Source: Lepidodermella squamata
Taxonomy: Eukaryota; Animalia; Gastrotricha
Assembly: GCA_047495785.1 (NCBI GenBank)
Contig: JBLDXI010000032.1
Span: 1,116,001 to 1,180,000 of the forward strand
Length of the DNA stretch: 64,000 nucleotides
Direction of reading: 5' to 3'
Shown: piece by piece, positions 9,727-40,700 of the stretch
Numbering within the stretch: the stretch's first letter is position 1
Layout: every line of letters starts with the position of its first letter
The notes under the pieces: model-generated
What the model saw: only the letters and a program-made list of their open reading frames with translations
What the model was told of the DNA's origin: nothing
The model's database searches: none
Position numbers and translations under genes: made by a program

Positions 9727-9857
9727 CGAACATTATTATAATCTCACATGAATATGATTTATAATGCCATTATGATGAAGGTCCCGCAATATTTTTTGCA
9801 TGCAATCTTTGGACTTTCTCAATGTTCTTGCGTTACCTATAAAACCGAAAACAACTA

Positions 9858-10024
9858 CAGTGCAAGTCGTCTAAATCGGACTCGGGTCGCGCTCGGGTCG
9901 CTCGGGTCGCTCGGGTTGCGAATTCCAGACTCCCAAAATCCGTCAGGTTTATACCACCAGACCGGTTGAGAATGAAGTCCACACTTTTGGACTCAAAAAC
10001 TTCCGGTTTAGACAACTTTCACTG
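9858..10024. mobile_element. Tc1/pogo-type MITE (CAGTG termini, TA TSD)
   Basis: ta|cagtgcaagtcgtctaaatcgga ... tccggtttagacaactttcactg|ta imperfect TIRs, with internal ctcgggtcg repeats. Confidence 0.75.
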
Positions 10025-18100: not shown

Positions 18101-19958
18101 ATGGCTTACTTTAAACCGACTAACGCTTCGCTGGCCTCGCCTGAAGAACTTCGAAGCATCCAGCCTGCAGCCACTCAGGAAGCGATGCAGCAACTTATCT
18201 ACCCGATGAGTCCCTTTCGCTTATTATTTGGTGACGATGCGGTAAGTGGTAAACATTGCCGGAACCATACGAAAAATACGCACCAAATTTCAGCGAATTT
18301 AGGCTACTAACTACTAACAAATAGGTAGTGATCCTCTAAAGATGATCATTGGTCTACTATAAAATTTTGAATTAGCCGAAAAAAACCCGGAAAATCACAG
18401 TCGGATCGAATTGATAACAATTTAAAAATTCGATTTTCAATTTCGGTGTTCAGGCTTCATCATTGTTGGCTAGAATTTCATAATAAATTTCAAAAACAAA
18501 GCTGTTTTTTCATTTTATCAGGTTTATTTTTCGGATATTCCGGTCCTCACTTATTGTTCTGAGCCCGGCGACTTGGAACCAACTATTCCCATGAATCAAG
18601 ATTTCAGCCCTTATGATATGGTCGCATCACCGTTTACTAACCTTGATTTAAAAAATCAAGTGATCACTGCGAAGCATGGCTTAGATGATCAGCAGCACGC
18701 TTACGGTGTTATGCAAACTTATCATAGCTGCCCGCGAAAAAGCCAGGCGATCTACATGGATCAAATGGACGGGCTGTATTCGGTAAGTGACTTGGTTGAA
18801 AATCATGCTTCTCTCAAAGCATAATCTTTTCAAAAGATGAAGGTTTCGAGTGATTCTGATGGATGTGATAGTCGATGCTTCCAGGTCAGTGCGGCTATGT
18901 CCGTGTTTTGCGCAAGAGGTTATTGGAACTAAATTTGCAAGTTATTATGATTACTGAAATTGACCAGATCTTGGATCATGCTATTTGAGTGCTCAAATCG
19001 AGGCTGGTATTCCGATGCTAGATTTCGCCAAGGCAGTAGTTCGGTGTCTTCATTCCAAGCGATGCGTTTATAATGTGAGAATATGGCACGCTTCTTCATT
19101 CAACAATTTATTTACATTTATTTACAGCTTCCAGAAAATTTAGCTGCACACTTGAGGGATGGACTGGGCTGTCGAGAAGTAGATACTTACATCCATCACG
19201 CTTTCGGGGTTTTCATTGAGACAGCGAGCGGCGACATACTGATCGGGATGGTTTTCGCTCAGCTGTATGACCAGCATTCGATTGTGAGCAATCGAAGTCG
19301 CGTGAACTTCCAGTTTTTATACTGTGCCCAGGCTGCTGATCTGTCGCAAGAGCTCAAAGAATACGCCTGCAAAGTTTTTGATCGTTCGATCATAACCTTC
19401 TTCGCTCTTCTTAAATCTTGCAATTACAAAACTGCGCATTTTCGAGCCGACGACGAAATGAGCGCATTGTGGTGTCGTGGAATTATTGACCAGGCTGTTG
19501 ACTGGGCGATCGTTATCGATTATAAGGCCTTGGGTTATGGCTCTCGTATTTACAATTTCTGGGATTTTTTGAAGCGGGAAGGCTCTCAGAGACGAATTGC
19601 GAAAATTCCTATTTTCCACGGCGACATTATTCAGCAAGCAATAGAAGATAAAATTATTAGACTCTTGAGGTCGAAGGCGGGGCTGTTCGACGAAAGGAAG
19701 ATGTGGCTCTCCGTTAACGAAACGGCAAAGGCTGAAAATAGCCGTAATTTCGTAGCTGTACTTTGCCACACAAATACAGAGCTCGTGCCTATATGCAGCC
19801 ATTTTGAAGCACCCCAAGTCAATCAAAATCAGGGCTCTATTTTTGACAGTTTGGAAATTTTCGCATCGTTTTGCGCGACTCGATCGCTGTCCTTCAACAC
19901 CGTAGCTGAGGCGATGACTTCAACAGCTCACATCATCCGCCTGGCTTGGGCAGGCTGA
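18101..19958 (+). CDS. p300/CBP HAT (KAT11)-domain-only paralog 1, predicted catalytically dead
   Basis: Last two exons align with the CBP HAT domain: VVRCLHS~VTVRVVHA, FAQLYD..SNRSRVNFQFL~HVQEY..PNTRRVYISYL, YKTAHF~YTTGHI, IPIFHGD~LPYFEGD, LSFNTVAEAMTST~LEFSSLRRAQWST. Confidence 0.75.
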
Positions 19959-20511
19959 GCACTCCGTCGGAAATTGTCGGAAGTTGGAACCGTCTAAAAC
20001 TCTGAGACAACCGCTTGGCTTGCTGATTTTTAATTTTTAATTTAAATGATTCTTTTTGTATTATTATTGTATTATTGTATTCTTATTGTATTATTGGCAG
20101 TTCAAAGGGCGCACTGCTTGCACTGCACTTCACTGGGGCACTTGAAGGCTTTTGCACTGCCAAACTCCCAGTAAAACGCTGATTAACCACTTTTCGAGTT
20201 GAAAATGAAATATTCGTACGATATTCCGTCCCCGTGAAAAGTTATTGCCGGCCGTTAAGCTACAAGCTTTTTGTATTCTTGTCAATGGACAAGACACAAG
20301 GCAAGAAAATTTGGCATTCGATTGCTCTCGCATTGATTTTCTCGCTACGATTAACCGTTAATAAAATGTGCACGCGCTGCGCTCTCACTCTCTGATCGCG
20401 TGCCACTTTTAGCATGCCTTTTGGCGGTCTGTATTACTAGCCATTTATAAATCTTTATTTCCAGTGTTTTCAGGAGGCAAGGCATTACGAGGAATTCTAT
20501 GATATCATTCG

Positions 20512-22588
20512 ATGGATGTATTTGATCCGTATGACGCTTCGCTGGCCTCACCGCTACCAGACTACTGGCGTGCGGAAGACGCCTCAACTCCGGTTCAGGT
20601 AAAGCGGATGGTTCGCGGCAACGAGCTGAGCAGGCAGCACGGCTTGATATCTTCGCCAGACCGAGGTCACAACGAGGTCATACATTTTGATCTTATATTT
20701 TCTTTTGACTTTTTCTTTCATTTCAGACTGAACTTGATGAAATTTTGCATGACGCGTCTTTCCACTTGGGCCCGGTCGCAAACAATGCGGAGAATGATTA
20801 CTCTTCTGTTGACCATCTTACCGATTTGCATGAAGCAGCCACTCGCGAACATCAGCAAGTTACTGAAAAAGAATGCGTAGATGATGTCCGAAAACGTGGA
20901 ATGCAAGATGAGCAAAGCGATTCGGCGAACACTGCAAACCCGTCCATGTTACAGGAGCAAATGGGCACTTCGGTAAGTGAATAGGTCGAAAAATCTGGCT
21001 AACAAATACGGTATTTTGTCAAAAGATGAACGATTCGAACTGCCCGAATGGATGTGAGATCGGCCCTGTACAAAATGTTCAACGTTACACGCCTAACGAT
21101 ACAAACGTGGTGCTCTACCATCAGGGCCAAGTTGTTGGATATAATTCGATAAGTAAAATAAATGATAATGAAATTTGTTCCAGACCGGCTCTTCCACTGA
21201 TACCGGGGGATACGTTATCAATGGCATGCAAAATGATCTTGGGCATTATCCGAGTTACGTTCTGGTGTTCTACCAGGGTCAAATAGGCTGGAATATCGTA
21301 AGTAACAAAAAAGTAACCAGCAAACAAATACATTGAAATATTGCCAGGTGAGCATGCCCACTATGCAATTTTATCAAAGCCATCCGCCAACAAATCAAAA
21401 CCCTTGTTTGTCGAGAATCTATCTGTCGCTCCGGTAAGTAAATTGGTTTAAAATCTGCTTACTATAACGGCATTATGTCAAAAGATGAACGATTCGAATT
21501 CGAATGATGACAATCAACTTTCCCAGGCAGCTGCAACTTCGCAGCTTCGCGCAAGAGGTAATTCAGAGCCGCATTTAATAGTATGTAACTCAATGCGTGA
21601 TGAACAGATATTGAATCATGTCCTGTGTCTGAACACATCCAGTCTGGCCTTGCAATGCTGCATTTCGCCAAGGCGGTATTTCGTTGTCTTCGTTCCAAGC
21701 GAGTCATTTACAAAGTGAGTAAATGACGAGTTTCTTCATTCAAAATGTGTTACATATTTCTTAACAGCTTCCAGGCAATATCGCTAGTTGCTTTGAGGTT
21801 GAACTGAACGGTGCGAAATTCGATGTTTACACCCATCACGTTTTTGGAGTTTTTTTGGAGAGCTCCAAAACGCCGAATTCCGCCGCCGGTGACCTACTGG
21901 TCGGCATGATCTTCGCACAGTTTTATGACCGGCAATCCATTGTGAGCAATCGACGCCGGGTGAATTTCCAGCTCATGTTCCGTGCTGATCTGCCTCAGGA
22001 CTACAAAGAAGACGCAAAGACGGTTTTTGATCGTTCGATCGTCATCTTCTTGGAATTTCTTCGCTGCTGCAATTACCAAACTGCACATTTTCAAGCCAAC
22101 AACGAAATTGACATGTCGCGGTGCCGTTCGATTATTGACGAGGCTATCAAAGCGGGGAAAATTCTGGAAAAAAGCTGGAAAGCGCTCGTATTTACAATTT
22201 CTGGGATTTTTGCAGGGCGATATCCACTCGAAGAGACATTGCGAAAATTCCCATCTTCCACAGGCATATTGTTCAGCAAGCAATAGAAGATGAAATTAAA
22301 CGCTTTAGGTCGAAAGCGGGGAAGTTCGAGGAAAAGGAAATGAACAAGATGTGGGTCTCCGTGAACAAAACTGCAAAGGCTGAGGACAATTTCGTCGCTG
22401 TGCTTAACAACAAAGATGAAGAGCTTCAACCTTTATGCAGCCATTTTCGAACATCTCACGCCAGTCAGGATCAGCAGGAATCTATTTTTGACAGTATTGA
22501 GATTTTCGCAGCTCGATCGCTGGCTTTCAACACCGTAGCTCAGGCGATGTCTTCGACAGCTTATTTAATCAATCAAGTAACGAGTTGA
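20512..22588 (+). pseudogene. p300/CBP HAT-like paralog 2, frameshift in last exon (about 22170-22185)
   Basis: Same exon set as the other copies. The conserved RIYNFWDF block is out of frame with upstream KILEK, and homology resumes in the frame of ORF 22340-22588. Confidence 0.7.
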
Positions 22589-23724
22589 ACTTTGAAAGGT
22601 GACACATAATTAACACTTTTTGCTCCTGACTATTTGAAACTAAGTGAGCCTATGAAATAACGAAAGTTATTGCAATTTTGCATTTTTCTGTCTTTGCGTG
22701 ATTCTTTGTGCAGTTGGCTGGGTTGTCATACATAACTAAGTATGAATAAACAATAAACAAATATTTGTATTCAACCGTTCTTATATGGGCACCGCCACTG
22801 ACAAATGCTTTGTTTTTAGGCTTCATCCTCATCTAAAAATTGCTAGCGTCGCGGTATTAAGAACCATTTAGACGGTAACAGGGCCGGATTAACGTTCGTT
22901 AGACCCCAGGGCACTATTGGTGGCCCTCATTTACATTTTCCTGCGAATTTAAAAAGGTTGTTATACCGAGTGCTGTTTGCATCATGACCTAATTCTTGAC
23001 TCAATTTTCCGCAAGACAATTTTGAATGACAGTTGCTATGAGGTGGAACTTCAAAATCCAACAAAACCAAACAGAAACTTGTCAATATTTCGCCTAAAGC
23101 ATGCCTAAGGAATCACAAAAATTTTTCAAATTAAACCCCTTCTGTTCCTCGGAAATGAATTCTGCAGTACGCATACCTACCGTCAAGGCATAGCGTGCGA
23201 GTTTGAAACCGCTACCCAACGCTACGGCGAGCGAACTTTTGCCGTAGAACTCGATGTTCTCGATATATCGAGCAAATTGCTAAATTAAGCTTTACAGACA
23301 ATATCGCGACAGAAGAGTAAACACGCTGCCCAGCGCGGCATACCAGGTGGCTGCCAAAGCCAGACAGCCGCCTTCGATTGAACACGAGAACTTGGCTGAT
23401 CGCTTATCATTGAATCGAAATGAATCGAAATAACAAACGTTGAACTTTAAACATGATCTTTTTTTATACACTCTATACTATACCTACACACTATGTATTC
23501 GCTTTTTTCACACACATTTCATAGGAAACATATCATGTCACTGAAGCTGCTTGGCATTAAGTTATCGCACCAAAAGCGCTGCGGGGCGTTTGGGAGATAA
23601 TAAATTCCCAAAGTGGGTCGAATATATTTAGACTTACTGTATTAAAGCAACATTTCTTATCTCATTTTCTTATCTCATTCTCAAACGCAAAAAACGTCGC
23701 TCCTTCGAATAATCCAATCTGTTA

Positions 23725-24003
23725 AGTGAGTGCGAAATAACGAGGTGTTTTTCTCTGAAATTCCGCTTTTGAGGTGAGCACGGTAACACTCATTTATTAT
23801 TATTATTATTATTTATTATAACATTTCAATTTTTTGGAATATTCAAAACAACAGTAAGCATCATTGGAAATTCTCCGCCGTCTAATATAGCTAAGAATAA
23901 TTCGGCTAAAACTCTTCGCTGGCCTCGCCAGACGATGGCCTCAGCTTCCTAGCAGCTGCTATAGAGTCCACGCATGGATCAGTTTCTCGATTTGGGCGAC
24001 CAC
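23725..24003 (+). pseudogene. 5' relic (upstream region and first exon) of a fifth HAT-like paralog
   Basis: Matches 34900-35200 (ctggcctcgccagacga; atggatcagtttctcga). The start codon appears lost (ATA). Confidence 0.65.
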
Positions 24004-24599
24004 GCGCCACGCGGCGAGACGTCTAGCTTTTGCCCAACTTCTAATAAATGTAGGTAACACTTTTCAACGCTGTTATGTCGCTTTTCCGTCGCGCGCTGCT
24101 ACGTCACAGATGGTAGTTATGCTGGTTTGTTGCGATCCCTGTTTCGTGACCGCTGTTTTGTCGGTCCGCCACTTTTTATCGTAGCGGATAATAAATCAGG
24201 CATACATGCAAGATACGGGATGCCTACTGAATCACTACTGAGGGCACACAGCACGACTAGCAACGTCATTTGATGTATTCTCTATTTACAAAGCCAACAT
24301 ATTTCGAGCTTCGACAATTTAATGAAGTCCCATGCAGGTGTAAGGAACCAACTTGAAGAGATAAATACGTCCCTATGGAGAGACTTCCAGATGAACTGGA
24401 TTTTTACATAGAGACATCAGCCCCTGCAAGTTATCAAGTATTGGGTTACAGTTTTTAGCTCACATTTTTAACCTTAAGAAACCGGCGTTTCTAATGGGGG
24501 GTTTTATGACTGGCATTTTCACTCACCTTCATTTGTTATTTTATAGCTTCAAGTTTTAACATTGAAAATAGCCTCAACTCATATCGGGTTGTAATTGTA

Positions 24600-27500
24600 A
24601 TGCTGCCTGACAAGGTGCACAAGTTCAATGGAATCGGCGGCGGCCTGAAGCGGTCTGAAATTTTGAAAAGCAATGCCTATCAAGACACAGAGTTAACGGC
24701 AAACCCGCAGTTGCATAGAGAGGTAGAAGAGGCTAATTGCCCAGCATTAAACGACGTTGATTGTGCCACAACGATGTCATCAATGAGCATTTCCGAGCTC
24801 TACGTGCCTTGCGGCCTTGCAGCCATATCCTGCTCGAGTTTTGAAAATGCAAAGCTGGCGATTGACGAGCAGCGCGTGGCGATTCCTCCACCTCCATCCA
24901 CCTCCAGTTCCAAGTAAGAAATTTTGGAGATTTACGAAATTTTGTTTAAAATCAAATTCTAAGCACCTCCCAAGAGTAGCCTCGTATTGAAGTATATCCC
25001 CGCTATCAACTATCATCTCTGATCAAAAGGCTTTTCTAATTTTCCCTTATAATCCCTCTTAATAGAAGAATCCAGATGTTTGAAAAATTCTCTGAGTTCA
25101 CAAAAATCAAATGCTTGGGCAGTGGCTGCTGTGGATCAGTTTGGCACTGCAAAGCTGTGGACGATTTCGCGTACTACGCTGTCAAGGTGGTCAATCTTCG
25201 CGCGACTCGATGGAAGTATCGAAAGAACCCGGATATGGCTGACAGACTAGTCAACTTGGGCAGAAAAGAGGTATACACCAACTATATTATAACGCTATAG
25301 TTAAAATACTGACCTTATTGAATCTGTTTAACAGCATGAAAAGCTGTTGCATTTGAGGCACGCCAACATAGTTTCATTTTACGACGCTTTTGAAGGTCGG
25401 GTAAAACTCTGAGCCCGCTTGTGATATCAATTACTAGTAAAAATTATTTTAGAACCTTTGGTGGAACTAGATGATACGAACCAACATGAGTTACCATGGT
25501 ATCTTGCAGATGAGATGTACTTTCTCGTCATGGAATTTTGTCCCGGCGGAGATTTACAAGAATACATTAATCGAGCTAACGCACCCATTCCAGAAGATTT
25601 GATTCGTGATTGGGCTCGACAACTTGTTTCGGCAATAGCATGGCTTCATAAATGTTGTGCACTCCATCGCGATATCAAGCCGAGGAATATTTTCCTCCTA
25701 GCCGATGGAAAAACTGTTAAGCTAGGTGATTTTGGATTCGCCAAAATCTATCATGAGTGAGCCTTATTAACAGTTGACGGGTTGATAGCTAACATTCTTC
25801 TATTTTTCAGGTCACAAAGCACCACAACCCTGGGACTCGGAACCACTCTCTACGCCGCGCCTGAAATTTTTAACGATGAGCAGCACTCGCCAGCCAGTGA
25901 TTGGTGGTCCTTTGGAGTGACGCTGTTTGAGTTGGCTAACTTTCGCCTTCCTGTAAATGACATTCTGATATAATTCAGCTATTGTTTTTACAAGTACCTA
26001 TTTTACTTCTTGCAGTTCAAAACAACATTCGAGATCATTTCGTAAGTTTAAGACCTTTCACTGCTTGCATTTGGCCAGATGGCTGCCCCAAGGCTAAACA
26101 TAAAAGTTTGCTCGTATTCAGGCGCGAGACGCTGCCACAATTTGACGATGGTCGCCCGTTGTCTTCTGAGTTTCGTGACTTCGTGTTATCTATGCTCCAA
26201 AAAGAGATATTGCAACGAGCTAAGGCAGATGATTTGCGGAAGAGTTCTTTTTTGACGCTAAAACCGCGGGCCAGCAGCGTTACTATAACCAACCCAACGA
26301 GCGATACCAATTCTGTACTTAATCCAGCAGCGACTTTGAAGGCAAGCCGGTGCATTCGTAGGAATTTCAGTACACCTTTTATGTCTTTACTTACAGCTGC
26401 TATTCCAATACTCGAGTCAACGAATGTTGCCGGAAATTGAGAAATTGCTGGAGGATGGGCGGTTGAATTTGAACGCGAACTGTCGGGACGAAGCCGGCTT
26501 CACGCCATTGATGATTGCAGCTCAGGAGGGATTCGATGAATTCATGCAGCCCTTGGTAGAAAAGTATGGAGCCGACGTTGAATTAAGGGACGAGCAAGGC
26601 AGAACAGCAGTGCACATTGCTGCTGAAAATGGGCATATCAAAGCTGTGCAAGTTCTTGCAAATCGTTTCGGGGCGGATATAGAGGCAGCTCGAAACGTCA
26701 AGGCGACGCCGTTATGGATCGCTGCTCAGAATGGTCACCTGGAAATAGTCAAGCTTCTTGCTGAAGACTTCAAGGCAGAAGTGAATATAGCAAAAAACGA
26801 TGGCGCCACGCCGTTATACATCGCTGCTGAGAATGGGCACCTGCAAATCGTAAAGCTTCTCGCCGGAGACTTCAAAGCTGATGTGAATGCAGCGAAATTA
26901 GATGGCGCTACGCCGTTATTTATCGCTGCACAGAATGGTCACTTTGAAATCGTGAAGCTTCTTGCTGGAAAGTTCAAAGCCGATGTGAATGCAGCGACGA
27001 ATTGTGGTGTTACGCCGTTATATACCGCTGCTGAGAAAGGTCATGTGGAAATTGTGAGGCTTCTCGCTGGGGACTTCGAAGCCGATATCAATGCAGCGAC
27101 TAACGATGGTGCTTCACCGTTATTCATTGCTGCTCAGAAAGGTCACTTGGACGTCGTGAAGCTGCTCGCCGGAAACGTTAAAGCCAATGTGAATGCAGCG
27201 AGGTATACCGGTGCTACGCCGTTATACATCGCTGCTCAGAATAATCACTTCGAAATCGTTAAAACTCTTGCTGAAGACTTCAAAGCCGATGTCAATGCAG
27301 CCAAAAACGATGGGGCTACGCCGTTATTCATCGCTGCGCAGAATGGTAACTTGGAAATCGCGAAGCTTCTTGCTGTAGACTTCGAAGCTGATGTAAATGC
27401 AGCGAGGAATACCGGTACTACGCCGCTTTGGATCGCCGCTCAAAACGGTCACTTGCAAATCGTGAAGCTTCTTGTTGAAGAATTAAATTCCGATGTGAAT

Positions 27501-28067
27501 GCAGCTAAAAACGATGGTGCTACACCGCTATTCATCGCCGCTCGTAATGGTCACATAGAAATCGTAAAGCTTCTTGCTGGAAACTGGAAATCCGACGTTA
27601 ATTCTGCGACGAAAGATGGTACTACGCCGTTATTTATGGCTGCTGAGAATGGGCATCTACAAATCGTGAAGCTTCTCGCTGGCGACTTCGAAGCCGATTT
27701 GAATGCAGCGACGAATGATGGAGCTACACCGTTATTCATCGCTGCACAGCAAGGCCACCTGGATATTGTTAATGCTTTGACTCGCTTATTCAATGCGGAT
27801 GTAAATAAGGCGCGAGATGGCGGCTCCACACCGTTGATTGTCGCTTCATATCACGGTCGTCACTCTGTTGTAGATTTTTTACTGCAGGTGCCTGGCATCA
27901 GCGTAAATGCTCGAATGCGTTCTATGGGATGGACGGCTCTATCTGCAGCCATGAACTGTGACTCAGATGTGGCGCCTGATGACAAACAGAAAACAATCGA
28001 TATCCTGTGGAAGGCTGGAGCTGAGGCGCCCAGAATAGTCACAAGAAAGTTCAACATTCGCATTTAA
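24600..28067 (+). CDS. Ser/Thr protein kinase (NEK-like) fused to about 14-15 ankyrin repeats
   Basis: GSGCCGSV, YAVK, HRDIKPRN, DFG, YAAPE, SDWWSFG across short-intron exons. The last exon has tandem 34-aa TPLxIAAxNGHxxIVKLL repeats. Start codon uncertain. Confidence 0.85.
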
Positions 28068-28208
28068 TAATTACGCGTAGTAGATGAGTCAAATTTACAA
28101 CAATGATATTCGAATTATTTTTGCTTACTGAATTCTATGGCGCTTCCTATTTTTGCAAACGCCTTGCGAATTCATGTCGCACTTTGAATAAATTCTATAC
28201 TGTCACAC

Positions 28209-28347
28209 TATATATGCAGCTATTCCGAAGCACCATAAAAGTCCATCAGGATCAGGAAGCTACTTTTTGCATTTGAAAATTTGATCGACGATTTTCGACA
28301 CCGTAGCTGAGGTGAAGTCTTCGGCAGATTGTATATTCATGATGTGA
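28209..28347 (+). pseudogene. 3' relic of a fifth HAT-like paralog
   Basis: tatatgcagctattccgaagcacc...ttcgacaccgtagctgagg...tcttcggcagatt matches the 3' end of copies 1-4 (e.g. 19790-19935). Confidence 0.65.
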
Positions 28348-29638
28348 TTATTCAGTTCTGTCATATTGGATGTTGGACGATTCCAGTTCTGTGAACGTGG
28401 CGCATAATAACCACTCGGCAACGCATAAGAAAATTGGATTCCTTGCCAAACGCTCACCTGTGAATGGTCGCGGGGTTGAAACTTGTTTTCTCACTTATGG
28501 ATTTTCCTTAACGTAATGCCGAATGTGCGAGGGTGGGCGTTTTTTCTTAAATTTGGCCTTCCTTCGCCATCCACGAAACCCGAAATACACACAGTCACGT
28601 GGAAGAAAAATAAAATCATCGTATTCTTTTTCGTATAATGCCGAAAAAAATATCGGTGGATTGTGATTCAGCTGTGAGAACGTTTTACTTTCTTTAAAGA
28701 GAAATGATCAAAAAACTTTCTATTGTCCAATTTCTAATTCTTCCAAAAAGCACGCAATGAGCTTTGCGCTAAGCATAAGTATATTGTTTATAGTGAGCAG
28801 TACCATGTATAGATTTTTGTCTTCCCTATCTGCGCATTTTAGGGTAGAACGATCGATTTCGGAGGGTGTTTATAATATTCGCACTGATCGAGAGAGCTAC
28901 GCGCTTTGTTGTTGATTTGCTATTAGCATCACCTAGCTGCGGCTTTGTTGCTCAGCTACGCCTAGCGATGATCCGCTGGGTTGTAAAATTTGTGTTCCTC
29001 GCGCTGGGTGCATAATAGGATGTCGCATATCATTCAACTACATTCATTTTCAGCAATTCCCTTTCCATTTTCAATTTTGCTGAGAAATTCTTGCCAAGAA
29101 AATGTTTTTCAGCAGGAATAGCTTTGCAGTATTTTCTGCGGAAAGAAGACTATTTTCTACGGAGAAGGGCGTGGTCCACATACCGTCAAAGAATAGATTT
29201 AGGAAATTTGGACAGCGGAACATGTCTATACGGACCATATCTTGGATTGATAACAGGAGGAACTCGGAGCCATCTTCTGGACAACATTAATTTTGGATGC
29301 TAATTATTTGTCCATGCTTGTGGATTTGCATGGTGCTTATACCAGAATTGCGAAGGAAGGAAGGAGTGTTCAACACCAAAACTCCGAGGACGATGACATG
29401 AGCCCGGAATTATTTAAAAATTAACTAAAACCATTTTTGCGGCGTGTATCGAATATTGCCTGTGTGTTTTGCCAAAAAGATGCAAACGTAATCACTGCGC
29501 AAACGTAATCGCCGCGTACTGTCTCAACTAGTACCCCGTTTTGGGGTGTAAGAAGGTCGTAACCCTGTCAAAATAGCATTATAATATAAAATTATAATTA
29601 AAAAATCCGCCTTAATCGCTTTCCATGGAGAAATATTA

Positions 29639-29938
29639 TACAATATCTGGAAGCTTTGTAGCGGATAGTATACCATATGCGGGTGGCTATCATTGGTGGA
29701 TAGCACGATGGATATTGGCCTGAAGGCTTGCTATGTAGGCTCGAGGCGCAGCCGAAGGCCGGAATAGTGATCTGAAGGATGAATATCCATCGCTGTCCAC
29801 CGATGACACCCGGATATGGTTGTTATCATCAAATCTGGAAAATATTCGCCTGAAGACCAGCTACTATGCAGCCGAGGGTCGGAATAGCGGCCTGAAGACC
29901 TATTTGACCTATCCGCTACAGAGCTTCTAGATATTATA
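29639..29938. mobile_element. MITE-like element with nested inverted repeats
   Basis: aatatctggaagctttgtagcggatag / ctatccgctacagagcttctagatatt, an inner IR (accatat..gatggatatt / aatatccatc..atatggt), and two gcagccgaRgg motifs. Confidence 0.6.
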
Positions 29939-29947
29939 TCTAGATAT

Positions 29948-30158
29948 CATATGTTGACTCGGAAAATTCAATTATATGACCACAGTTTTGCGACCTCGAG
30001 TCATTTTATTCGGATAATGTGTGGAAATTCAGCGACGTTTCGGTTACCACGTGCGCTGAATTCACCTACGTCGCTGAATTTGCACACATTATCCGAATAA
30101 AATGACTCGAGGTCGCAAAACTGTGGTCATATAATTGAATTTTCCGAGTCAACATATG
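29948..30158. mobile_element. Near-perfect palindromic MITE (about 91-bp arms, TA-flanked)
   Basis: Arms 29948-30038 and 30068-30158 are reverse complements with one mismatch. Confidence 0.85.
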
Positions 30159-31285
30159 GAAAACTAAAGCCTTAGTGGTTTCATCGCTTCTAGATATATT
30201 TGCAATACAGGTACCAATCTCAGTTGAATTTAGCGAAAATATTGAAATTAAAAAATTGTGATAAAATTTGCAAAACCATATATAGTAAAAGCGAATGATT
30301 TTCAAACGCCGATCATTGTTCGTTTTTTCGCAGCGATTTGAAATGACTTTTTATTCACGCCCTTCTGCATCAACATGGGTCGCATCAATTTCGGTAAAAC
30401 GAAAAAGTCCATCTCAGCACTAGGTCGTTCTTAGAAGTCGAGCTTCCAATGCGCAAGAAGAATTTCCAGTCAACCAGCCAGTACTGGCCGATCAGGCTCA
30501 GCGATGGCAGCGAAATGTCTCGGCGCACTTGTTTGCTGTTACATCCTCTCTTGGCGCCAAACCGATTGACGAGTTGATCTGAGCCAGCTCTAGATATCAG
30601 GCTTGGCCCGCTTGTTCCCGTGTATTTGCGGCAAATCCTTCTATCTTGTTAATTTTCTCGTAATTACGGAATAATAAAATGGTGGGGGGTCGCGGGGATT
30701 TTGCCGCCTCAGTAGTTTCGTGACTTTATTCAAATTGTTTCCGTGATTGAATAAATTCAAAATGGGGGTGACTGCTGCCAAAATTTCGACCCATGACCTG
30801 AGATTAAATCAGCCCGGTATAGCAGAAAATATTCCGGGCTATTTTACAGCATATTTCACACTATAATACTTAACTTGCCATAGAGAATCATGTGTTTCTC
30901 CACGGCAAACAATATACCTGCAGGTGATACGGCACATCCTATTGTGCATTTGTGCACAAACAGGCTAACATTAGTCCGAAGGTCCAGGAAAACGGTTACC
31001 TTGAACCTGGTGTCGCCTATCTTTGACATGTACAAAAAGTCAAAAAGTGGCTTGCATAGAAAATGTGGAATCCACAGTGGTGATAATATCGCTTTCGTCG
31101 CGTCAAAATTCTTCATGATGGGCCATAATTCTCTATAATGATCGGCTACCCTATATGATGCATAGTGGCTGTTCGGGATGAGCCTCGAAAATAGTTTTAA
31201 TGCACCGCTGTAGCTATGAAATTTTTGCTAGGGCTAAACTTGGTGGAAAATCTCCACAGTCCTAAATGTCTCTAATTCATCCGAC

Positions 31286-33424
31286 ATGCTCGACGTTACT
31301 CACTTCAGGCGATCATCGCAGTTTCCCAGATTCACCCTAGAAGAGGTTGAGCGACTGCTAAAATCAATCGACTGCGGTAAGCCATTGCTATTGCTTTGCG
31401 CTTGATTTTCATGGCATGCATATGAATGCAGGAAACTCAGCAAGTTAGCCGCTAACATCAGTGGAAAATCTCCGAATTCTCAAAAGCTTGATTCGACCAA
31501 CTCTCTGTTGGCCAACCGTGGCTTCTTCCTAGTTAAAGCTCCAGAAGATTTGAAGCCGTTGATGCAATCAATCGACGAAGATACGGTAAGTCATGTGTAT
31601 AAATATGAATGCAGCAAAATCTAAAAATTGACAATTTTGATCGAGATTTTGCAATAATACTTCAGATGTTTGCTGGTCTTCTGGATTTCTTGCCCGATGA
31701 GAATTCTGATTTTAACATTTGCGATAGTCCCCTGCTGCCAGGCCAACCTGATTTTGTAAAGCCCCCGCCCCCTACCATATTTCTTGAAAAAACAGCAACT
31801 GAAATAGATCAATCAGCCGCTGTTTTCCAACAAAATTCAGATGAAAATGATAAAATCCAACTGCCTAATCATGTCAATGCGGTGATCTACCAAGATCAAG
31901 CGGGCGCCAGCGCGAATGCGGTATGAAGAGAAAGCAATAGCTAATAGCTAATAGCAAAAAGGTGAGGTTTTCCTAGATGTACTTTGCCACTAATACCAAT
32001 GGATGCGAGATGGGTTACATGCAAAACGACTGTAGCTATCCGCCTAGTAATGCAAACTCGTCGATTTACCAGCAACAACCGGGCGCCTTGAATCATGTAA
32101 GTAAAGAAAATAAGAGCTTTTGGCAATAACTGAGAATGGGTGAACCGAAATCTGGAATTTTTGCCAGGTGTGCATCCCCTGTGATACCAGCGGATGCGCT
32201 ATCGGTTTCATGCAAACAGCTGATCAAAACTATCTGTCAAATGATGCTAACTTGGCCTGGAATTCGGTAATTAAATTAGTTGAAATCTGGCTCATCTAAA
32301 CTGTATGACGTTTAATAGGCGGCCGCTTCGAACTTTTATGATAGAGATGAAAATCAATCCATTCGAATGCTCCGTGCAAGAGGTAATAGGAGTTGCACTT
32401 ACGAATCAGACTTACATGATGCCGATATGATATATGTTGACCAGAACTTGCACCATGTAACCTGAGTGCTCGAATCCAGTCGGGCATTTCAGAGCACGGC
32501 TTTGCAAAGCCGGTAGTTCGATGTCTTCATTCCAGCCGATGCGTTTATGATGTGAGTAAATGACAAACCTTTGATCCAACAATTACCTATTTTTATTACC
32601 AGCTTCCAAACAATCTAGCCTGGCAATTCAGCGCTGAGTTGGAAGGTCGAAAGCAAGATGCTTACATTCATCACGTTTTTGGGGTTTTCATGGAGACAGC
32701 GACCGGCGACATACTGATTGGCATGATCTTTGCACAGTTGTATGATCAGCAATCGATTGTGAGCAATCGAAGCCGCGCGACTTTCCAGCTCCTGTACCGT
32801 GCTGATTTGCCTCAACAGCTTACAGGATATGCCGACCTGGTTTATAATCTGTCTACAATGAACTTCTTCAAACTTCTTGGCTCTTGCAATTACAAAACTG
32901 CGCATTTTCGAGCCAGCAACGAAACTAACGAGCTGCAATGCCGTGGAATTATTGACCAGGCTGCCAACTCGGGGATCATCATTGATTTTAAGGACTTGGG
33001 TTCTGGCTCTCGTATTTACAATTTCTGGGATTTTTGCAAGCGGGGAAGCTCTCGAAGACAACTTGCAAATATCCCCATCTTCCGCGGCGACACTATGCAA
33101 CGAGCACTAGATGATAAAATCGGCAAGTTCTTGAAGTCGAACACGGGGCAAATAGACGAAGATAAGATGTGGCTCTCCGTGAACAATACTGCAAAGGCTG
33201 ATAACAGCCACAACTTCGTCGCCGTTTTTCGTCGCGATAATGCAGATCTTCGATCTATATGCGCCCATTTTGGAGCATCCCAAGCCAATCCGGCGCAAGG
33301 ATCAATTTTTGACAGTTTGGATATTTTCCAATCGGCTTGCGCAACACAATCACTGGCATTCAACACCGTAGATCAGGCGATGTCTTCAACAGCTCACATA
33401 ATCCGCCTGGCTTGTGCAGGTTGA
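31286..33424 (+). CDS. p300/CBP HAT-like paralog 3, predicted catalytically dead
   Basis: Same exon modules and HAT-like last exon (ORF 32639-33424). The first exon is duplicated and the start is uncertain. Confidence 0.72.
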
Positions 33425-33887
33425 CGTCTCATTCGGAAACTGCTGGGAATTGGAAACCTTCAAAAATGATAGCGATCTTGATGAGTGGAAACATTTATTC
33501 GATTTCTGAACATTTAGATTTTAGATATCCTCTTATCGCCTGGAAACAGCTGGAAAACAAGTCAGCTGGAAAGAGGTGGCAAATTTTAAAATGTGCCAGG
33601 TATTTCCAGCAAACTATTTCCAGCTATTTCCATCAGTATTTCTCCACGTTATTCCATGTGATTCTGATACCTCGTGTTTTCGTTCTAGCTTCAATTAATC
33701 AAAAAGAGACGAATAAACATTAATCAGTATTTTAAATAAATAAGTGCCAGAGACGTGTCAAAAAGTAACGCATAAAGATACGAAGTTGAGGAATTTATAT
33801 GAGTAGGCACCAGGCACAGCCAGAATTCCGTTTCCATTGCTTCCGCAGCAGCGGCAGGGTCTTCACAGGCCTTTTCATCGCCTATCG

Positions 33888-34215
33888 CTTCTTCTTCTTC
33901 TTCTTCTTGTTTTTCCAAGCCGAGCCACTCGCAGCTAGGCTCGATGCACGATGACTTTCATCTTCACCATATTATAAACTTCACTCGATTCGAGCACCAT
34001 ACCAGCTCCAAGGATTATACCTGAAAAACAATAAGAATGTTTAGCAGCAGACAAATAACATAACTCTTACCGTAATTTTTACTGCTTGCCAAGTTTTATG
34101 ATTTAAGGGACGGCGTCGGCTGAGGTATCGAACCCTCCGCCTCTCACAAATCGGCAGCCCAAACGTTTTCTTTGCCCACCCTTACCTCTCCTCTTACCTG
34201 CTGAGCCAGCTATGG
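33888..34215 (-). mobile_element. Candidate tRNA-derived SINE with (AAG)n tail
   Basis: Minus strand has an A-box-like tggctcagcagg (34197-34208), a B-box-like ggttcgatacc (34124-34134) and an (AAG)7 tail at 33888-33908. Single copy in this window. Confidence 0.35.
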
Positions 34216-34313
34216 CGAGTATCGCCATTAATGTTATATTGTTACGTTAATCGTCAATTGTCAATAGCGAAAACACTACAACCACGCGATCTCAAAAATC
34301 AAAAATTCTTTAG

Positions 34314-34711
34314 GTGCCAAATATTTGCACCACTAAACATGAGGTTCCAGCACTAAGTTTGAACGTCCTGGCACACAATTTGTTCAGATGTTGTGCGATT
34401 TGTGAGATTTTTTGCAATTTTTGCGATTCTTTTGGAAAGTTGGATTTTTATTATAGCTACCTGGCGCCCTAAGCTAAGTAGAAAAATTATCCAGGTTTGC
34501 TTCCAAGACGGCTGATAGGTATCGAAAATCGGAAAAATCACTGATTTGTAAATTCGCACAAAATGCGCGTAATATTAAGATCTAACGGTTAGGCGTTTTA
34601 GCAAAAAACTTAGATTCTAGTGAAACTCGAAAAACCAAATTTAGTGGAATTCAAGTGTTGAAGTCTCAAAAATAATGCTCGAACCCTAAATTTAGGGTGC
34701 ACAATTGGCAC
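34314..34711. mobile_element. Degenerate MITE
   Basis: gtgccaa..tgcaccactaaa..ggttccagca vs the reverse complement of tgctcgaaccctaaatttagggtgcacaattggcac. Confidence 0.5.
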
Positions 34712-35057
34712 AGCCATAATATTTAAGTTGGCAACATCAAACGATTTTGTATCCTTTTCATTATCTTGAAGAAAAAGAAGTCTTTATTGCCGTTATCTCC
34801 TTTCAATTTGAATCATCCAATGCGATAATTTGTGCGATAGCGACCCAATGGGATGATTCAAATTTAAAAAAGGAGATAACGAGGAGATTATTGTGAGTGA
34901 AATCTCAAAAGATGAGCAACCGATTATGTCTATACATTTCCACTTTTGAGGTTGGCGCGGTATTAATTATATCTCATATCATTTCAATTTGCTCCAAAAA
35001 ATATAATTATAACAACATCAGCGAGTATCAGTGGAAATTATCCACTGCCTCTATAAA

Positions 35058-38000
35058 ATGGCTGAAACTGATCCGACTATTAACTATTTGCTGGCCTCGC
35101 CAGACGACACCCGCAGACTCCTGGTTAAAACTCCCGAGTTACAGGAACTGCTACAATCATACGATCCGATGGATCAATTTCTCGACTTTGGCGACGGCGT
35201 AGTAAGCTATTTAGCTATTGCCTAACGTACTGTTTCCGTATTGTTGCAAATCAATGTACATACATTCATTTAAATTTTTGGGAAGTAGCGAGTCTCCACA
35301 TTTGTTAGATGGAAAAAATTGAAGTAATTCATTTTTCTTGTACCTGGATGCCGGGTGGTTTGCACCCAGAGGAAGACCCCGGACCAGGTGGATCAACGGA
35401 GTGCACAGGAGTTTGATTAAAGTAGGAATCACTAAAGAAATACGCCGGAAAAAGAAATCTAACACTACGAAAGGCAAAAAGAATAAGGGTACTAAGAAAA
35501 AAGGTGATAAGAAAAAACCCGGCAAAAATAAGTTTGAAACCAAAATTATTCCTGATTTACAATTAGCTGAACTCGCATCCTTTGAAAAAGATGAATGGCG
35601 CATGATTGTTAACTCAATTGATAATTATGAATTTTTCGGAAAAAGCAGAATCTTCAACTGTGGGGGTGGGTAAGGATCAATTTTCAATCTTTGCCTGCCT
35701 TCGCCCTCTTCAAAACCGGAAACGGTATAATGACGTGCAGTCTAGGAGAGGCTAAATAAAACTATTATTATTATATTATTATCATTTTTCTTCTTAAAAG
35801 AGGGCAGTTTTGGGTTTCTAAATCTTGTAGAGTATTCGGCAAGTTGAAATGCGATAAATTCCTGAACATTTCGCGTTCACGTGGCTTACCATCGACGTCC
35901 AATGTGAAATTTATCGATTTTTGGTGATTTTTTCACCACAAGTTGAGCAGGAGTTTATTTGGGACCCCTATATAGTCGTTAGGTGCGCGTTAAAACAGAA
36001 AGTCTTGACCGAGATTTTTTAATTTCAGACCACTCCTTTTCCGGCCGATAATAATTCTGATTTTATCATTTGCGATATGGTAACCACGCTGCCCGGCCAA
36101 CCTGATGTTCCAGTGCCCCCCATATTGGTTGAAACAGCCACTAGAAAGGATCAATCGGTCATTGATTTTCAAAAAAACTCAACTGAAAATGATCAACATT
36201 TCCTGCTTAACGATGCAAACATGGCGAACTACAAGGGCCAAGTTGGCGATTGTAATAATTTGGTTGGTGAAATAATTGAGAACATGCTCATAAAAAATGA
36301 AATTTTGCCAGATGTTCTACCCCAATGGTACCAGTGGATACGACATCGGTTCAATGCAAAACGATCAAAGCTATGTGCCCTATGACGCTAACTCGCTGAT
36401 TTACCAGGACCAAGCTGGTCCATCCTATAATGCAAATGTAGCGATCTACCAGGAGCAATGTGCCTCGAATCCGGTAAGTAAGGAGAAGAAGAGCTTGATA
36501 ACAACAACTGAAAGATTTTTGGACCGGTTACGTCGCATTGTGTGTAACAATTCGAAATCTTGATCGAGATTTTCAATGTTTCAGACTCCGGCCGATTATT
36601 CTGATTTTCTGGCCGATACGCATTCTGACTTTACGACTTTCGATACGGCTCCCATGCTTCTTGGCCAACCTAGCGTTCCAGTGCCTCCCATGTTTGTTCA
36701 AACAGCCACTGGAAACAATCAATCTGTCGCTGATTTTCAAAAACGCCCGTTTGAAATTGATCAACCTTTTCTGCCTAATGATGCAACCTACCAGGGCCAA
36801 GTGCACTACTCGGTAAGGAAGGAATATAAGTAACTTCTAACAAAAATCGAAATTTCCCCAGACGTGCTTTATTCCAACCAATACCAGTGGATACGATATC
36901 GGTTGCATGCAAAATGGGTACGGCTATCCGCCCAATATTGCAAATCCGTTGATTAACCAGCAACAACCGAGCGGCTGGAACCAGGTAAGTAAAGAAAGTA
37001 AGAACCTGATATTAACAAGTGAAATTCTGCCAGATGGGCATCCTCAATGTTGCCAGCGGCTCTGATGCACTCGACTTCTTGCAAAATGATCAAATCCATC
37101 TGCCCAATGCAAGCGCGGACTGCCGCTATCAAGTGGGTGCCTGGTACCCGGTAAGTAGTTCAAGTTTGAAAATCTGGCGTGTTTAAACCGAATGATGTGC
37201 AAAAGGCGAACGATGCGAATTTTTATGATGCATATGAAAACCATTTCCTCCGAAAGCTCCGTGCAAGAGGTAATTTGAGCCACCCTTATAGGAATCAGGC
37301 TTATACTCTGTCGATTTATGTTGACCAGATCTGGCAGACTGCAACCTGAGTAAAAAAATCGAGTCTGGTATTTCAATGCACGGCTTTGCTAATCCGGTAG
37401 TTCGGTGTCTTCATTCCGGGCGATGCGTTTATGACGTGAGTCTTGACTCTGACCAGTGTCTTCATTCAAATTTCAGCAAACATTTTTATCAGCTTCCGGA
37501 AAGTCTAGCCGTGCACTTCAGCGCTGAGTTGGAAGGTCAAAGACAAGATGCTTACATCCATCACGTTTTCGGGGTTTTTATGGAGACAGCGATCGGCGAC
37601 ATTCTGGCCGGCTTGATCTTTGCGCAGTTGTATGATCAGTATTCGATTGTGAGCAATCGAAGCCGCGCGAACTTTCGGTTCCTCTACCGTGCTGCTGATC
37701 TGCCTCAAGAGATCAAAGAACACGCAGAGCCGCTTTTTAATTGCTCGATCCTGAACTTCTTGGATCTTCTTCGCCTCTGTAATTACATTACTGCGCATTT
37801 TCGAGTCGACAACGAAATGAAGGAGCTGCGTTGCCGTTGGATTATTGACGAGGCCATAAGAACAGGGAGAATTCTCCCTAAAACAAACAGGAATGGCGCT
37901 CGTATTTACTATTTCTGGGATTATTGCAAGTGGATAAGCTCTCAACGACAACTTGCGAAGATTCCCATCTTTCACGGCGCCACTATGCAACGAGCACTAG

Positions 38001-38338
38001 ATAGTCAAATTGCCGAGCTCCTGAATTCGAACCAGGGGCAAATCGACAAAGACAGCGAAAATAATATGTGGCTCACCGTGAACAGAAATGTAATATCCGA
38101 AAACAATCAGAACTTTGTTGCTGCTCTTCGTCACACAACTGCAGAGCTTCAACCTATATGCGCCCATTTTAAAGCAGCCCAGGCCAATGCGATTCAACGG
38201 GGATCAATTTTTGACAGTTTGGAGACTTTCGAATCGACTTGCACAAATCAATCGCTGGCTTTCAATACCGAAGCTCTGGCTATGTCTTCTGCAGATTACA
38301 TAGTACACCAAGGACTTTTGAAGCCTCCATTAATGTGA
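35058..38338 (+). CDS. p300/CBP HAT-like paralog 4 with duplicated N-terminal exon modules
   Basis: MAETDPTINYLLASPDD first exon, then ENHFLRKLRAR/DLADCNLSKKIE (~ENKFSAKRLPSTRLGTFLE) and a HAT-like last exon ending at 38338. Confidence 0.75.
35338..35673 (+). mobile_element. RTE-like LINE ORF2 C-terminal fragment in intron 1 of paralog 4
   Basis: PRGRPRTRW..V...L...G...A...KDEWRMIV is the typical RTE C-terminus. Confidence 0.55.
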
Positions 38339-38850
38339 ACAGTGAGACATCGTTGGTATACTGCAAGGAAAAGTTCCATCCCAAAACAAAAAGTTAATAT
38401 TTTTCGGCCCAATTCGAAAGCACTTGGTAAATCAATTTCTAGATATCTAGATGGGGAGGGATTGCTTAAACAGACCTTAAAACTGTGACGCTAACGCCAT
38501 GAAAACTAGCTCAAATGGAGAAAATAGCGATAGAACTTCCGTAATAGAATTTGCGGTTTTTAAAGATTATTCTAATCGGTATAATTTGTATATTCGGATT
38601 AACTGAAAAGGCGTGTATCAAAAAGTGTTATCTCAAAATTGATAAAAAATGGAAAGAGAGTTTTCCGAGCGGCGAGGCTCCGAGCCGAATACCCCAGGGG
38701 ATTAGGGGGGATTAGATAGAAGTTTTTCTCGCAGTACCGCCAGCAAATTAACCACTTGGCTTGCTGATATTTATTCAAGAGAAAGATTCAAATAAAATAA
38801 GAAAATTGATCATGAGATGTCTTGTTTTCGCGATTTTTTGCACGACCTAC

Positions 38851-40700
38851 ATGAAGCTCGATGATGGAAGTGTCCTGCCGCCTTCTACTGCCCTTGCTGA
38901 TGCACTGCTTGATCATTTCGTCAAACCGATGTCGCCCTACGTCGACCCCGATGCGGACGCTGCCACTCGCCAGTGGTGGCAACAAGTCGAGGACGATGTC
39001 GTTGCAGATCCTGACCTTCGTGCTTCCGATGTGATCCGCTTGCCCGCTCTCGGCGAGTTTTCTGTCAGTCAACGGATGCTCGCTGATGCTGTTAGCCGTT
39101 TGAAGTCCTTCAAGGCCCCTGGCTTGGATGGTATTCAAAACATCTACCTGAAGTGGGGTGGCCCCGTCCTGCAAACCCACCTTCGTCGGCTGTTCAACAT
39201 GTCTCTTGGCAGTCGCTACGTGCCTCAAGCGTGGAAAGCAGCGGTTGTTGTGCCTATCCCAAAGGCCGGCAAGCCGCAGAACCATGTCTCGTCACAGCGT
39301 CCTATCTCCTTGCTGCCGACTGACGCCAAGCTCCTGGAGTCGATCGTGGCTCGGTGGATGACCCAGTTTCTCGAAAGTCAACACCTTCTCCCTGAGAATC
39401 AGTTTGCATTCCGTCCGCACCATTCCGCGCCAGATGTCCCACTTCGCATCGTTCATCGCGTCCACGTCAACCGCTCCCTGCGCAAGAAGACTGTCGTGGC
39501 CGGCTTGGATGTTCAGGCGGCCTACGATTCCGTGTGGCACGCCGGGCTGATCCATAAGCTGGCCCAACTGCCTCTCCCGCGAAATTTGGTCGGCTGGCTG
39601 GCCGACTATCTTCGCGACCGTCGTCTGCAAGCTCGCGTGGCGGGCTCGCTGAGTCGTCAAGTCGTCGTCCATTGCGGGGTGCCGCAGGGTTCCCCGTTGT
39701 CGCCGCTTCTCTACATTCTGTACTACGCCGATTTGCTGTCCGCCCCAAGCGTGGATGGCACGTTGCTGCAGGCCTACGCGGACGATCTAACTGTCGTCGG
39801 CGAGGGTGGCACGTTCCCTGCTGCTCAGCGTCGCCTCCAATTGGAGCTCACTCGTATTTCCGACTGGGCCAAGAAGTGGCGCCAGAAGTTTAATCCCGCG
39901 AAGAGCGAAGTTATGCCCTTTGGTAACGCGTCCGTTGATGTTAGGCTCAACGGAGCCGTAATTCCGCAAGTCGAGTCGTTACGAGTTCTCGGTGTTCACT
40001 TGGACCCTAAACTGACGTGGAAAGTTCATGTGGACAAGGTCTCTGACCGTTGCCGCAGAAATCTGGGTTTTTTCAAACATCTCATGTTCACCCCTGGGCT
40101 GTCGCGCCGCTGGCGCCGCACCCTTTACTTGACTCTGGTCCGTTCGTGCTGGTCTTATGGGACCATTTGTCTGGCTACCGCCTCGAAGCAACAGCTTAAT
40201 CGTCTCGCAGTCATCCAAAATGATAGCCTGCGTGCAATGCTCCACATTCGTCGGGACGACAGGGTCCGCGTGTCGGAGTTGGAATCTCGTTGCCGCATCC
40301 CGAGTGTCCCTCGGTTTCTGGAACAGTGCCAGCGCCGTTATGTCGCCAAAGCCGCTCAGTTTGTCCTGCCGCTGCGCGAGGACCTCGAGAGCGTCCGCCT
40401 GATGGCCCGCCCCCCTCCGCGCTCGCCCTTCGTGCTGTTGAGCAACAGACTTCCTCGTGGTCCTCTGCCCGACTTCATAGGCTAGGCTGTTATTCTCTTT
40501 TCTCCCATCTTCTCTCCCATATCTTCCCTCTTTTTTCTTCACCTCTTCTTTCATGTTGTTTTTCTTTCCTCTACAGGCTGCCTTGCTTTTTATAAAATTC
40601 CTCCGTTAGCTACCGTTGTCTCCGCCATATTTTCTCCTTTTTACTCTTACCGCAATTCTCTGTAATGTGTTTCTCTCTGCTATCGATAACTACCCTGCAA
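38851..40700 (+). mobile_element. 5'-truncated LINE (Jockey/I-group-like) with intact RT domain
   Basis: ORF to 40485 has KAPGLDGI, RPISLL, QFAFR, GVPQGSPLSPLLY, YADD, LGVHLD. It is GC-rich relative to the host, lacks the endonuclease and has a pyrimidine-rich 3' UTR. Ends approximate. Confidence 0.9.

Follow-up and report, generated by a model that had tools for sequence, protein, structure and literature searches.

Four genes arranged in tandem in a 64,000-nucleotide (nt) stretch of DNA from the gastrotrich Lepidodermella squamata (contig JBLDXI010000032.1, positions 1,116,001 to 1,180,000 of the forward strand; the whole stretch is called the window below) end in a domain of ~340 amino acids (aa) homologous to the histone acetyltransferase (HAT) domain of p300 and CBP, the KAT11 domain. 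The homology is well supported over approximately p300 residues 1290-1520, which make up two thirds of the HAT fold, counted from its N-terminus. The copies, named c1 to c4, are best read as a real, lineage-specific, tandemly duplicated family derived from KAT11, which probably serves as a non-catalytic binding module in the control of transcription or chromatin. CBP/p300 is a central metazoan co-activator, the HAT domain of which is normally single-copy, extremely conserved, and set amid reader and zinc-finger domains. If the reading is correct, the array would represent the first natural family of KAT11 pseudoenzymes, and a natural test of the capacities left to the HAT scaffold once catalysis is gone, be it binding of substrates or partners, or competition with CBP.

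The copies were delimited by comparing the 320-aa open reading frame (ORF) found at 37376-38335 in c4 to the window by tblastn. Exactly four copies of the last exon were detected, all on the + strand, at 19015-19955 (c1), 21723-22576 (c2), 32495-33421 (c3), and 37376-38335 (c4). The first-pass annotation, made from the letters of the sequence, had listed four same-strand paralogs plus a relic. The paralogs were recovered, but the relic was not, the best extra match in the window (28745-28864, E value 0.6) not being significant and having been rejected as a fifth copy; the frameshifted c2 is the sole candidate relic in the window. Last exons are 45-63% identical at the protein level, an initial alignment of the proteins having given 47-60%, and 50-63% of the residues are shared among the spliced ~340-aa C-terminal domains. 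At the DNA level, identity ranges from 69 to 75% across ~1 kb.

Homology to the p300/CBP acetyltransferase domain

A set of KAT11 domains was assembled for comparison. A 67-aa p300 segment, 100% identical to residues 362-428 of 4bhw_A (p300 1394-1460), was used as bait, and led to 80 metagenomic loci and from these to 27 HAT regions of 455 aa, 20 of which are unique. The four members of the set that were checked carry both HAT_KAT11 and ZZ domains according to Pfam, with E values from 1e-42 to 1e-79. The family under study has five known members, and its profiles are consequently shallow (effective number of sequences ~2). Next to c1-c4, it includes P0001, the sole match obtained in an exhaustive profile search of 1.84 billion representative proteins (386 aa, E 2e-22, ~25% identical to the family). 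P0001 resides on four metagenome-derived contigs beside potassium channel and Cys-loop receptor genes, and on account of these neighbours comes from another animal. At L001 1705-7607, P0001 adjoins genes for Cys-loop receptors and Kv-type channels, the ORFs of which are long and uninterrupted. The ESM features of P0001 resemble those of nematode proteins (score 0.90), to be taken as a lead only. Neither single-sequence nor profile queries in a word-indexed search of 5.8 billion proteins gave more than P0001 or any link to KAT11, and no further members were found in scans of metagenome and viral contigs.

Alignment by hhalign of the spliced family to the 20 KAT11 domains gave a probability of 96.3%, an E value of 1.5e-9, and a score of 75.0 over 204 collinear columns. 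With unspliced frames, the corresponding figures were 92% and 6e-7, and the improvement obtained by dropping the residues that introns encode provides a check of consistency. Forty column shuffles scored 16.2 +/- 2.3 (maximum 22.2) and the reversed alignment 16.3, which sets the real score ~25 standard deviations above the shuffles. The homology over p300 ~1290-1520 is well supported because the real score lies so far above those of the shuffled and reversed controls, and the relationship to the p300/CBP HAT proposed in the first-pass annotation is borne out, as a remote homology, by this profile comparison. Aligned to the single 67-aa p300 segment, the family falls in the expected register, with a weak score (E 0.014).

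The same order of motifs was obtained by other means. A hidden Markov model (HMM) of the KAT11 set, run with all filters off (--max), aligned collinearly to c1 (18.7 bits) and to P0001 (17.1 bits), the latter alignment beginning with the N-terminal HAT helix. In unguided MAFFT alignments the shared motifs N..R, GY.T.H, and P.F.GD are superimposed, and the last ~100 aa of the family are paired with FFVIRL and DAFL...EFSSLRR, a pairing that does not reach significance when taken alone. The remote homology between the family and the CBP/p300 (KAT3A/B) HAT domain (PF08214) is collinear, starting with the N-terminal helix (RFSAKRL..IE.RVN), running across the central sheet, and reaching as far as the PYFEGDFW helix. 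The family remains below the Pfam gathering threshold for HAT_KAT11, and is placed by profile comparison within the superfamily as a remote member. It is best regarded as a degenerate variant of the known KAT11 domain family, and would represent a new domain family to which standard annotation (Pfam, HMMER) is blind.

Structure prediction gave a mixed outcome. AlphaFold, provided with a mixed alignment (the window copies, P0001, and 18 KAT11 domains), yielded a model with a predicted template modelling (TM) score of 0.65, and a predicted local distance difference test (pLDDT) of 80-92 over residues 60-180. In Foldseek comparisons of this model to PDB the top 50 matches are all p300/CBP HAT structures (TM score ~0.55, E down to 3e-11), a match not independent of the KAT11 rows present in the alignment. 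The AlphaFold and Foldseek check suggested beforehand gave the expected neighbours with the mixed alignment, whereas the window copies by themselves yielded no usable model (see below); the mixed-alignment model is compatible with a KAT11 fold rather than independent proof of it. No confident neighbour was found in the ESM Atlas, where the stored model of P0001 has a pLDDT of 0.29. GNAT-like structural neighbours of P0001 in the same resource (TM score 0.22-0.28) were not taken as evidence.

The KAT11-like domain is stand-alone, a conclusion supported by the scan of the upstream exons, in which Pfam detected no domain; as anticipated from the letters, KIX, bromo, PHD, ZZ, and TAZ domains are missing, and so is RING. 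No C2H2 or other zinc-finger pattern was found in the window. The literature search returned no described stand-alone family of degenerate p300/CBP HAT domains, in line with the statement of the first-pass annotation that no family of this form was known. A survey of eukaryotic chromatin proteins lists only CBP/p300 architectures and Rtt109 for the HAT_KAT11 domain (10.1101/2021.11.30.470311).

Catalytic positions and the proposed role of the domain

Changes at catalytic and cofactor positions were monitored in a joint alignment of 18 fetched KAT11 domains with c1-c4 and P0001, p300 numbering being anchored on the verified bait. Every change listed in the first-pass annotation is present. YLDS is replaced in the window copies by FLYC, LMFR, LLYR, and FLYR, HIWA by HFRA, HFQA, HFRA, and HFRV, EWY by LWC, SRC, LQC, and LRC, and the stretch CPP..GDDYIF..HP..QK.P..KRLQ is absent from all of them. 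The losses hit residues that are invariant in 18 out of 18 KAT11 domains, as D1399 (Y, F, or E in the family), S1400 (A, R, or N), W1436 (R, Q, or D), C1438 (D, S, or N), and Y1467, which is changed to Cys in c1-c4 and to Trp in P0001. The invariant tyrosines 1394 and 1397 are substituted by N, T, or F and by F, L, or V, respectively, and the position of the invariant W1466 holds R, W, or Q, or a gap. All five members of the family carry Ala in place of R1410, an Arg in 17 of the 18 KAT11 domains; T1411, conserved to the same extent (Thr in 17/18), is variable. Residues 1439-1464, found in KAT11 domains, are deleted in c1-c4 and P0001 alike, and with them four more invariants of the KAT11 set (Y1446, H1451, R1462, and L1463). 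The L1 substrate/cofactor loop (p300 ~1436-1459) is consequently gone from all five proteins, P0001 showing the same catalytic and loop losses as the window copies, and the lysine-rich autoinhibitory loop is cut down to ~20 residues. N1389, R1392, Y1430, H1434, and the P.F.GD motif are kept, and a beta-hairpin, GDIL.GMIFAQLYD..SIVSNRSR, is near-invariant within the family.

The best conserved part of the c4 domain spans 37493-37960 on the + strand (LPESL...GDILAGLIFAQLYDQYSIVSNRSRANFRFLY...CNYITAHFRVD...RWIIDEAI) and is homologous to p300 ~1340-1480. This core holds the altered D1399, R1410, W1436, and Y1467 positions, as well as the L1-loop deletion, and was modelled from the mixed alignment with a pLDDT of 80-92. 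In p300 structures (the Lys-CoA complex 3BIY and later ones), the L1 loop holds coenzyme A (CoA) together with R1410, the lysine is guided by W1436, and Y1467 acts as general acid. As the L1 loop, R1410, W1436, and Y1467 have all been lost, p300-type catalysis by the family appears very unlikely. The family displays the features of a pseudoenzyme, namely homology to an enzyme together with loss of the catalytic and cofactor residues, a spliced transcript for c4, and ratios of nonsynonymous to synonymous substitution (dN/dS) below 1, the inactivity being deduced from sequence.

The N-terminal halves bear on the role of the proteins. In c4, 336 aa made up of repeats precede a C-terminal domain of 338 aa. 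The composition of the N-terminal part (D+E 12%, K+R 3%, Q+N 17%, aromatic residues 11%, Pro 9%) is acidic, aromatic, and Q/N-rich, with Y and P abundant as well. Such a make-up is typical of transactivation-type disordered regions, for which TAZ and KIX of CBP/p300 are binding partners in other animals. Two repeated modules, LPGQP.VPVPP... and SGYDIG.MQN.Q, were recognized in c4; they recur upstream of c3, and weakly upstream of c2.

On the best reading, the ~340-aa domain descends from the p300/CBP HAT and has kept its N-terminal helix, its central sheet, and numerous structural residues. Its chemistry would have been removed, so that the proteins most likely neither bind acetyl-CoA in p300-like manner nor acetylate. 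What is left would probably act as a binding module in transcription or chromatin control, while the acidic, aromatic, transactivation-like disordered N-terminus may recruit partners, or compete for them, the CBP of the organism itself being an example. Such a regulator would bind partners or substrates of the real CBP. Loss of activity, a nuclear or regulatory role, the nature of the partners, and the action as decoy, scaffold, or dominant-negative proposed in the first-pass annotation are inferences.

Three known systems are worth comparing. Fungal Rtt109, an H3K56 acetyltransferase of KAT11 fold, is an active enzyme, keeps a loop covering CoA, and needs Asf1 or Vps75. Compared by description only, Rtt109 and the gastrotrich family both stand alone, lack reader and zinc-finger domains, and exhibit very low similarity to p300; the family differs in missing the loop and the CoA-anchoring Arg. 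The stand-alone nature of Rtt109, and its very low sequence similarity to p300, are documented (10.1101/2021.11.30.470311). The linked cbp-2 and cbp-3 genes of C. elegans, shortened partial duplicates of cbp-1, show expression and may have a role that needs no acetyltransferase activity (PMC10320766). They too are lineage-specific, linked, shortened CBP/p300 paralogs. Yet the partition is opposite: in cbp-2 and cbp-3 the N-terminal zinc finger and KIX are preserved and the HAT is missing, while a degenerate HAT is all that c1-c4 retain, and their divergence is far greater. Equivalence to these genes was rejected, since they lack the HAT domain. Finally, 'zombie enzyme' mutants of CREBBP found in lymphoma, dead as acetyltransferases, can have a dominant effect, since they occupy sites and block EP300 (10.1101/2023.09.05.556242; PMC12333230). 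These mutants are the functional model behind a decoy reading of the gastrotrich proteins, and tell that interference is possible in principle. They are full-length point mutants endowed with all recruiting domains, and since the gastrotrich proteins have none of these, the mechanism cannot simply be assumed to apply. In comparison to CBP/p300 itself, the family lacks bromodomain, PHD/RING, ZZ, TAZ, and KIX, has lost the L1 loop and, down to the residual residues mentioned, the autoinhibitory loop, and carries replacements at D1399, S1400, R1410, W1436, C1438, W1466, and Y1467; acidic repeats make up its N-terminus, the C-subdomain is unrecognizable, and the whole is below Pfam detection.

A more specific picture, for which the chances look rather low, is that the degenerate KAT11 domain, joined in the window to transactivation-like acidic repeats, may serve a fast-evolving system of transcription control as an effector or partner module peculiar to the lineage. 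It would be a functional analogue of the KRAB domain of KRAB zinc-finger proteins, and might bind, bridge, or block the CBP/p300 of the organism or its substrates without acetylating them.

The domain may alternatively still be an acyltransferase with a re-invented active site, using a Cys nucleophile or another acyl donor. A Cys does occupy the Y1467 position in c1-c4, H1434, Y1430, N1389, and R1392 are conserved, and the hairpin described above shows the near-invariance expected of an active site or a binding site. Rtt109 offers a precedent, being a chaperone-dependent KAT11-fold enzyme with different catalytic residues. This is unlikely, as the whole L1 loop is gone and R1410 is Ala in every member, both of which bury or anchor CoA in established p300 structures; P0001, with Trp at the Y1467 position, further indicates that the Cys is not a family-wide feature. 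To our knowledge, there is no KAT11-fold enzyme lacking an L1-type loop.

Retention, transcription and points against the proposed reading

Reading frames were inspected in a four-copy DNA alignment. A short intron, at 37436-37492 on the + strand in c4, is present in all four copies. It extends from GTGAG(T/A) to (T/C/A)CAG, ends just ahead of CTTCC, and measures 57, 51, 53, and 53 nt in c4, c3, c1, and c2, respectively. The c4 copy happens to be in frame and open. An in-frame TGA of c3 sits within the 51-nt intron (32552-32602), and the stop of c3 and the frame change of c1 are apparent only, since both fall inside the conserved intron; on this ground, damage to c1 and c3 was rejected. A second conserved intron, 49-62 nt long, is found just upstream. 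Once both GT..AG introns are removed, c1, c3, and c4 are uninterrupted for ~330-340 codons, up to the stop. The domain is encoded on the + strand in c1 by exons 18837-18918, 18968-19074, and 19128-19958 (including the stop), and in c3 by exons 32319-32382, 32445-32551, and 32603-33424, with the frame intact after splicing in either copy. The c2 exons (21485-21557, 21608-21714, and 21768-22588, + strand) contain one frameshift, a 4-nt length difference at a run of A residues near 22165-22181, the frame being open on both sides. This copy is either a young pseudogene or the product of an assembly error.

Substitution patterns indicate constraint. The dN/dS values obtained by the Nei-Gojobori method for the six pairs vary from 0.41 to 0.70, at dS values of 0.40-0.71, and all 95% bootstrap intervals are below 1. 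Pairs including c2 have the highest ratios (0.61-0.70). Of the copies of the c4 domain evolved neutrally in simulations, 0.2% were still open after 0.2 substitutions per site, and 0.01-0.02% after 0.3-0.35. Fifty-four residues are invariant between the window copies and P0001. The three intact copies, the conserved splice sites, and the residues invariant in P0001 argue for a functional family, under a constraint that seems moderate and fairly relaxed. The retention of the family surmised in the first-pass annotation from open frames despite divergence is thus in agreement with intact spliced frames, dN/dS ratios, and simulations.

Transcription, which the same annotation had asked to look for, was evaluated by using a public run (X2, labelled RNA by guess) and a DNA run (X1), contigs being placed on 32400-38399. 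X2 depth is near zero in several intergenic bins, as expected for RNA, and X1 covers all. When words of the last exon of c4 were sampled, 62% were present in X2. One X2 contig joins 36472 to 36584 with no mismatch, a GT..AG intron (36474-36584) being exactly removed, and other contigs cover c4 from 37507 to 38118, again with no mismatch. The c4 gene is therefore transcribed and spliced. For c1, evidence is limited to word presence (55% of the sampled words of 18960-19958). In X2, c3 is covered by contigs only 90-95% similar to it, one of which, matching the last exon at 32939-33327, has a depth of 255; the variant is found also in X1. These contigs point to one more paralog, strongly expressed and probably located elsewhere in the genome.

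The possibility that the copies are decaying duplicates, either pseudogenes or transcribed junk with no present function, is quite unlikely. It would accommodate the c2 frameshift, the fairly high dN/dS (0.41-0.70), the near absence of the family from public protein sets, and the location of the array among repeats and a reverse-transcriptase ORF. Against it, c1, c3, and c4 are open over ~340 codons at dS 0.4-0.7, when at most 0.2% of simulated neutral copies are; splice sites are conserved in all copies, and c4 is spliced and transcribed; and P0001, 25% identical and from another animal, keeps the 54 invariant residues.

Several results weigh against a KAT11-derived, non-catalytic binding module. 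No HAT_KAT11 match was obtained by Pfam hmmscan of c1-c4 and P0001. Only chance matches (ClpP; ribosomal protein L22, E 0.04) were found in PDB by phmmer and hmmsearch, and the exhaustive search of the 1.84 billion representatives, in which the single protein P0001 was hit, revealed no KAT11 match. The KAT11 link depends on the sensitivity of profile-profile comparison. Alignment across the whole HAT fold, as initially claimed, holds over p300 ~1290-1520 but was overstated for the C-subdomain, as the C-terminal ~100 aa taken alone scored 13.0 in hhalign, a value not significant when set against that of shuffles (11.7 +/- 2.3). Run on the four window copies only, AlphaFold returned a useless model (pLDDT 35); in the mixed-alignment model pLDDT is below 50 over residues 254-320, the C-terminal 67 residues, and KAT11 sequences fed into the alignment deprive the structural match of independence. 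The dN/dS values of 0.4-0.7 denote moderate constraint only, expression is clear for c4 only, and the Cys invariant at the Y1467 position in all four window copies would allow a different chemistry. A likeness to KAT11 produced by convergence or by a random coincidence of profiles, the domain then being an unrelated orphan fold, is highly improbable: the failure of HMMER-level searches (Pfam, PDB, 1.84 billion proteins), the unconfident family-only AlphaFold model and ESM Atlas model of P0001, and the unmatched C-subdomain would fit, but the hhalign score, which exceeds that of shuffles by ~25 standard deviations across 204 collinear columns, the separate HMM alignment with the same motifs in the same order, and the unguided MAFFT alignment of N..R, GY.T.H, and P.F.GD would not.

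Gene models and surroundings of the array

All four genes are on the + strand. The c1 gene spans 18101-19958, with a first exon starting at the ATG at 18101 (MAYFKPTNASLASP...), and c2 20512-22588, with a first exon starting at the ATG at 20512 (MDVFDPYDASLASP...). The c3 gene covers ~31609-33424, and exons made of repeat modules lie within 31609-32300. For c4 (35058-38338) a nine-exon, stop-free model of 674 aa was drawn, with exons at 35058-35201, 36029-36262, 36312-36473, 36585-36812, 36862-36984, 37034-37150, 37206-37269, 37329-37435, and 37493-38338. All eight introns of the model are of the GT..AG type; seven measure 49-111 nt, and one 827 nt. Most upstream introns are predicted rather than observed, as is the 5' end of c3.

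Duplicated exon modules (LPGQP.VPVPP..T.T...QSV.DFQK and ..SGYDIG.MQN.Q..) build both the 36029-37150 region of c4 and the 31609-32300 region of c3. Within c4, 36037-36413 is ~70% identical to 36605-36966. Within 18101-18145, 20512-20556, and 35058-35105, the first exons of c1, c2, and c4 have an (A/L)LASP motif in common, and P0001 shares it, in the form (A/L/I)LASP, at residues 48-56. It could represent a short linear motif, or else a site of phosphorylation.

Very high-copy repeats are located at 34200-34600 and 35400-35800, where X1 word depth is 2,000-10,000. The second is part of the first intron of c4 (827 nt) and bears a lysine-rich ORF (35338-35673). About 400 nt downstream of the c4 stop, a 574-aa RVT_1 reverse-transcriptase ORF (38761-40485, + strand) marks an element of the long interspersed nuclear element type; an X2 contig departs from the window sequence at 38360. 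No match was found by scanning the window with Rfam, and tblastn against phage records was empty. Between c2 and c3, an unrelated gene is found at 25458-28067 on the + strand, a Pkinase exon (E 2e-22) being followed by a 547-aa ORF with ~14 ankyrin repeats. The window is animal DNA, with ~42% G+C, many long exons, and NEMP, TRPM, sulfotransferase, Pkinase-ankyrin, and reverse-transcriptase ORFs. The NEMP-family ORF (8557-9726, + strand), the TRPM-channel ORF (55158-57642, + strand; SLOG, TRPM2-like), and the sulfotransferase ORF (61471-62355, - strand) confirm an animal genome with long exons.

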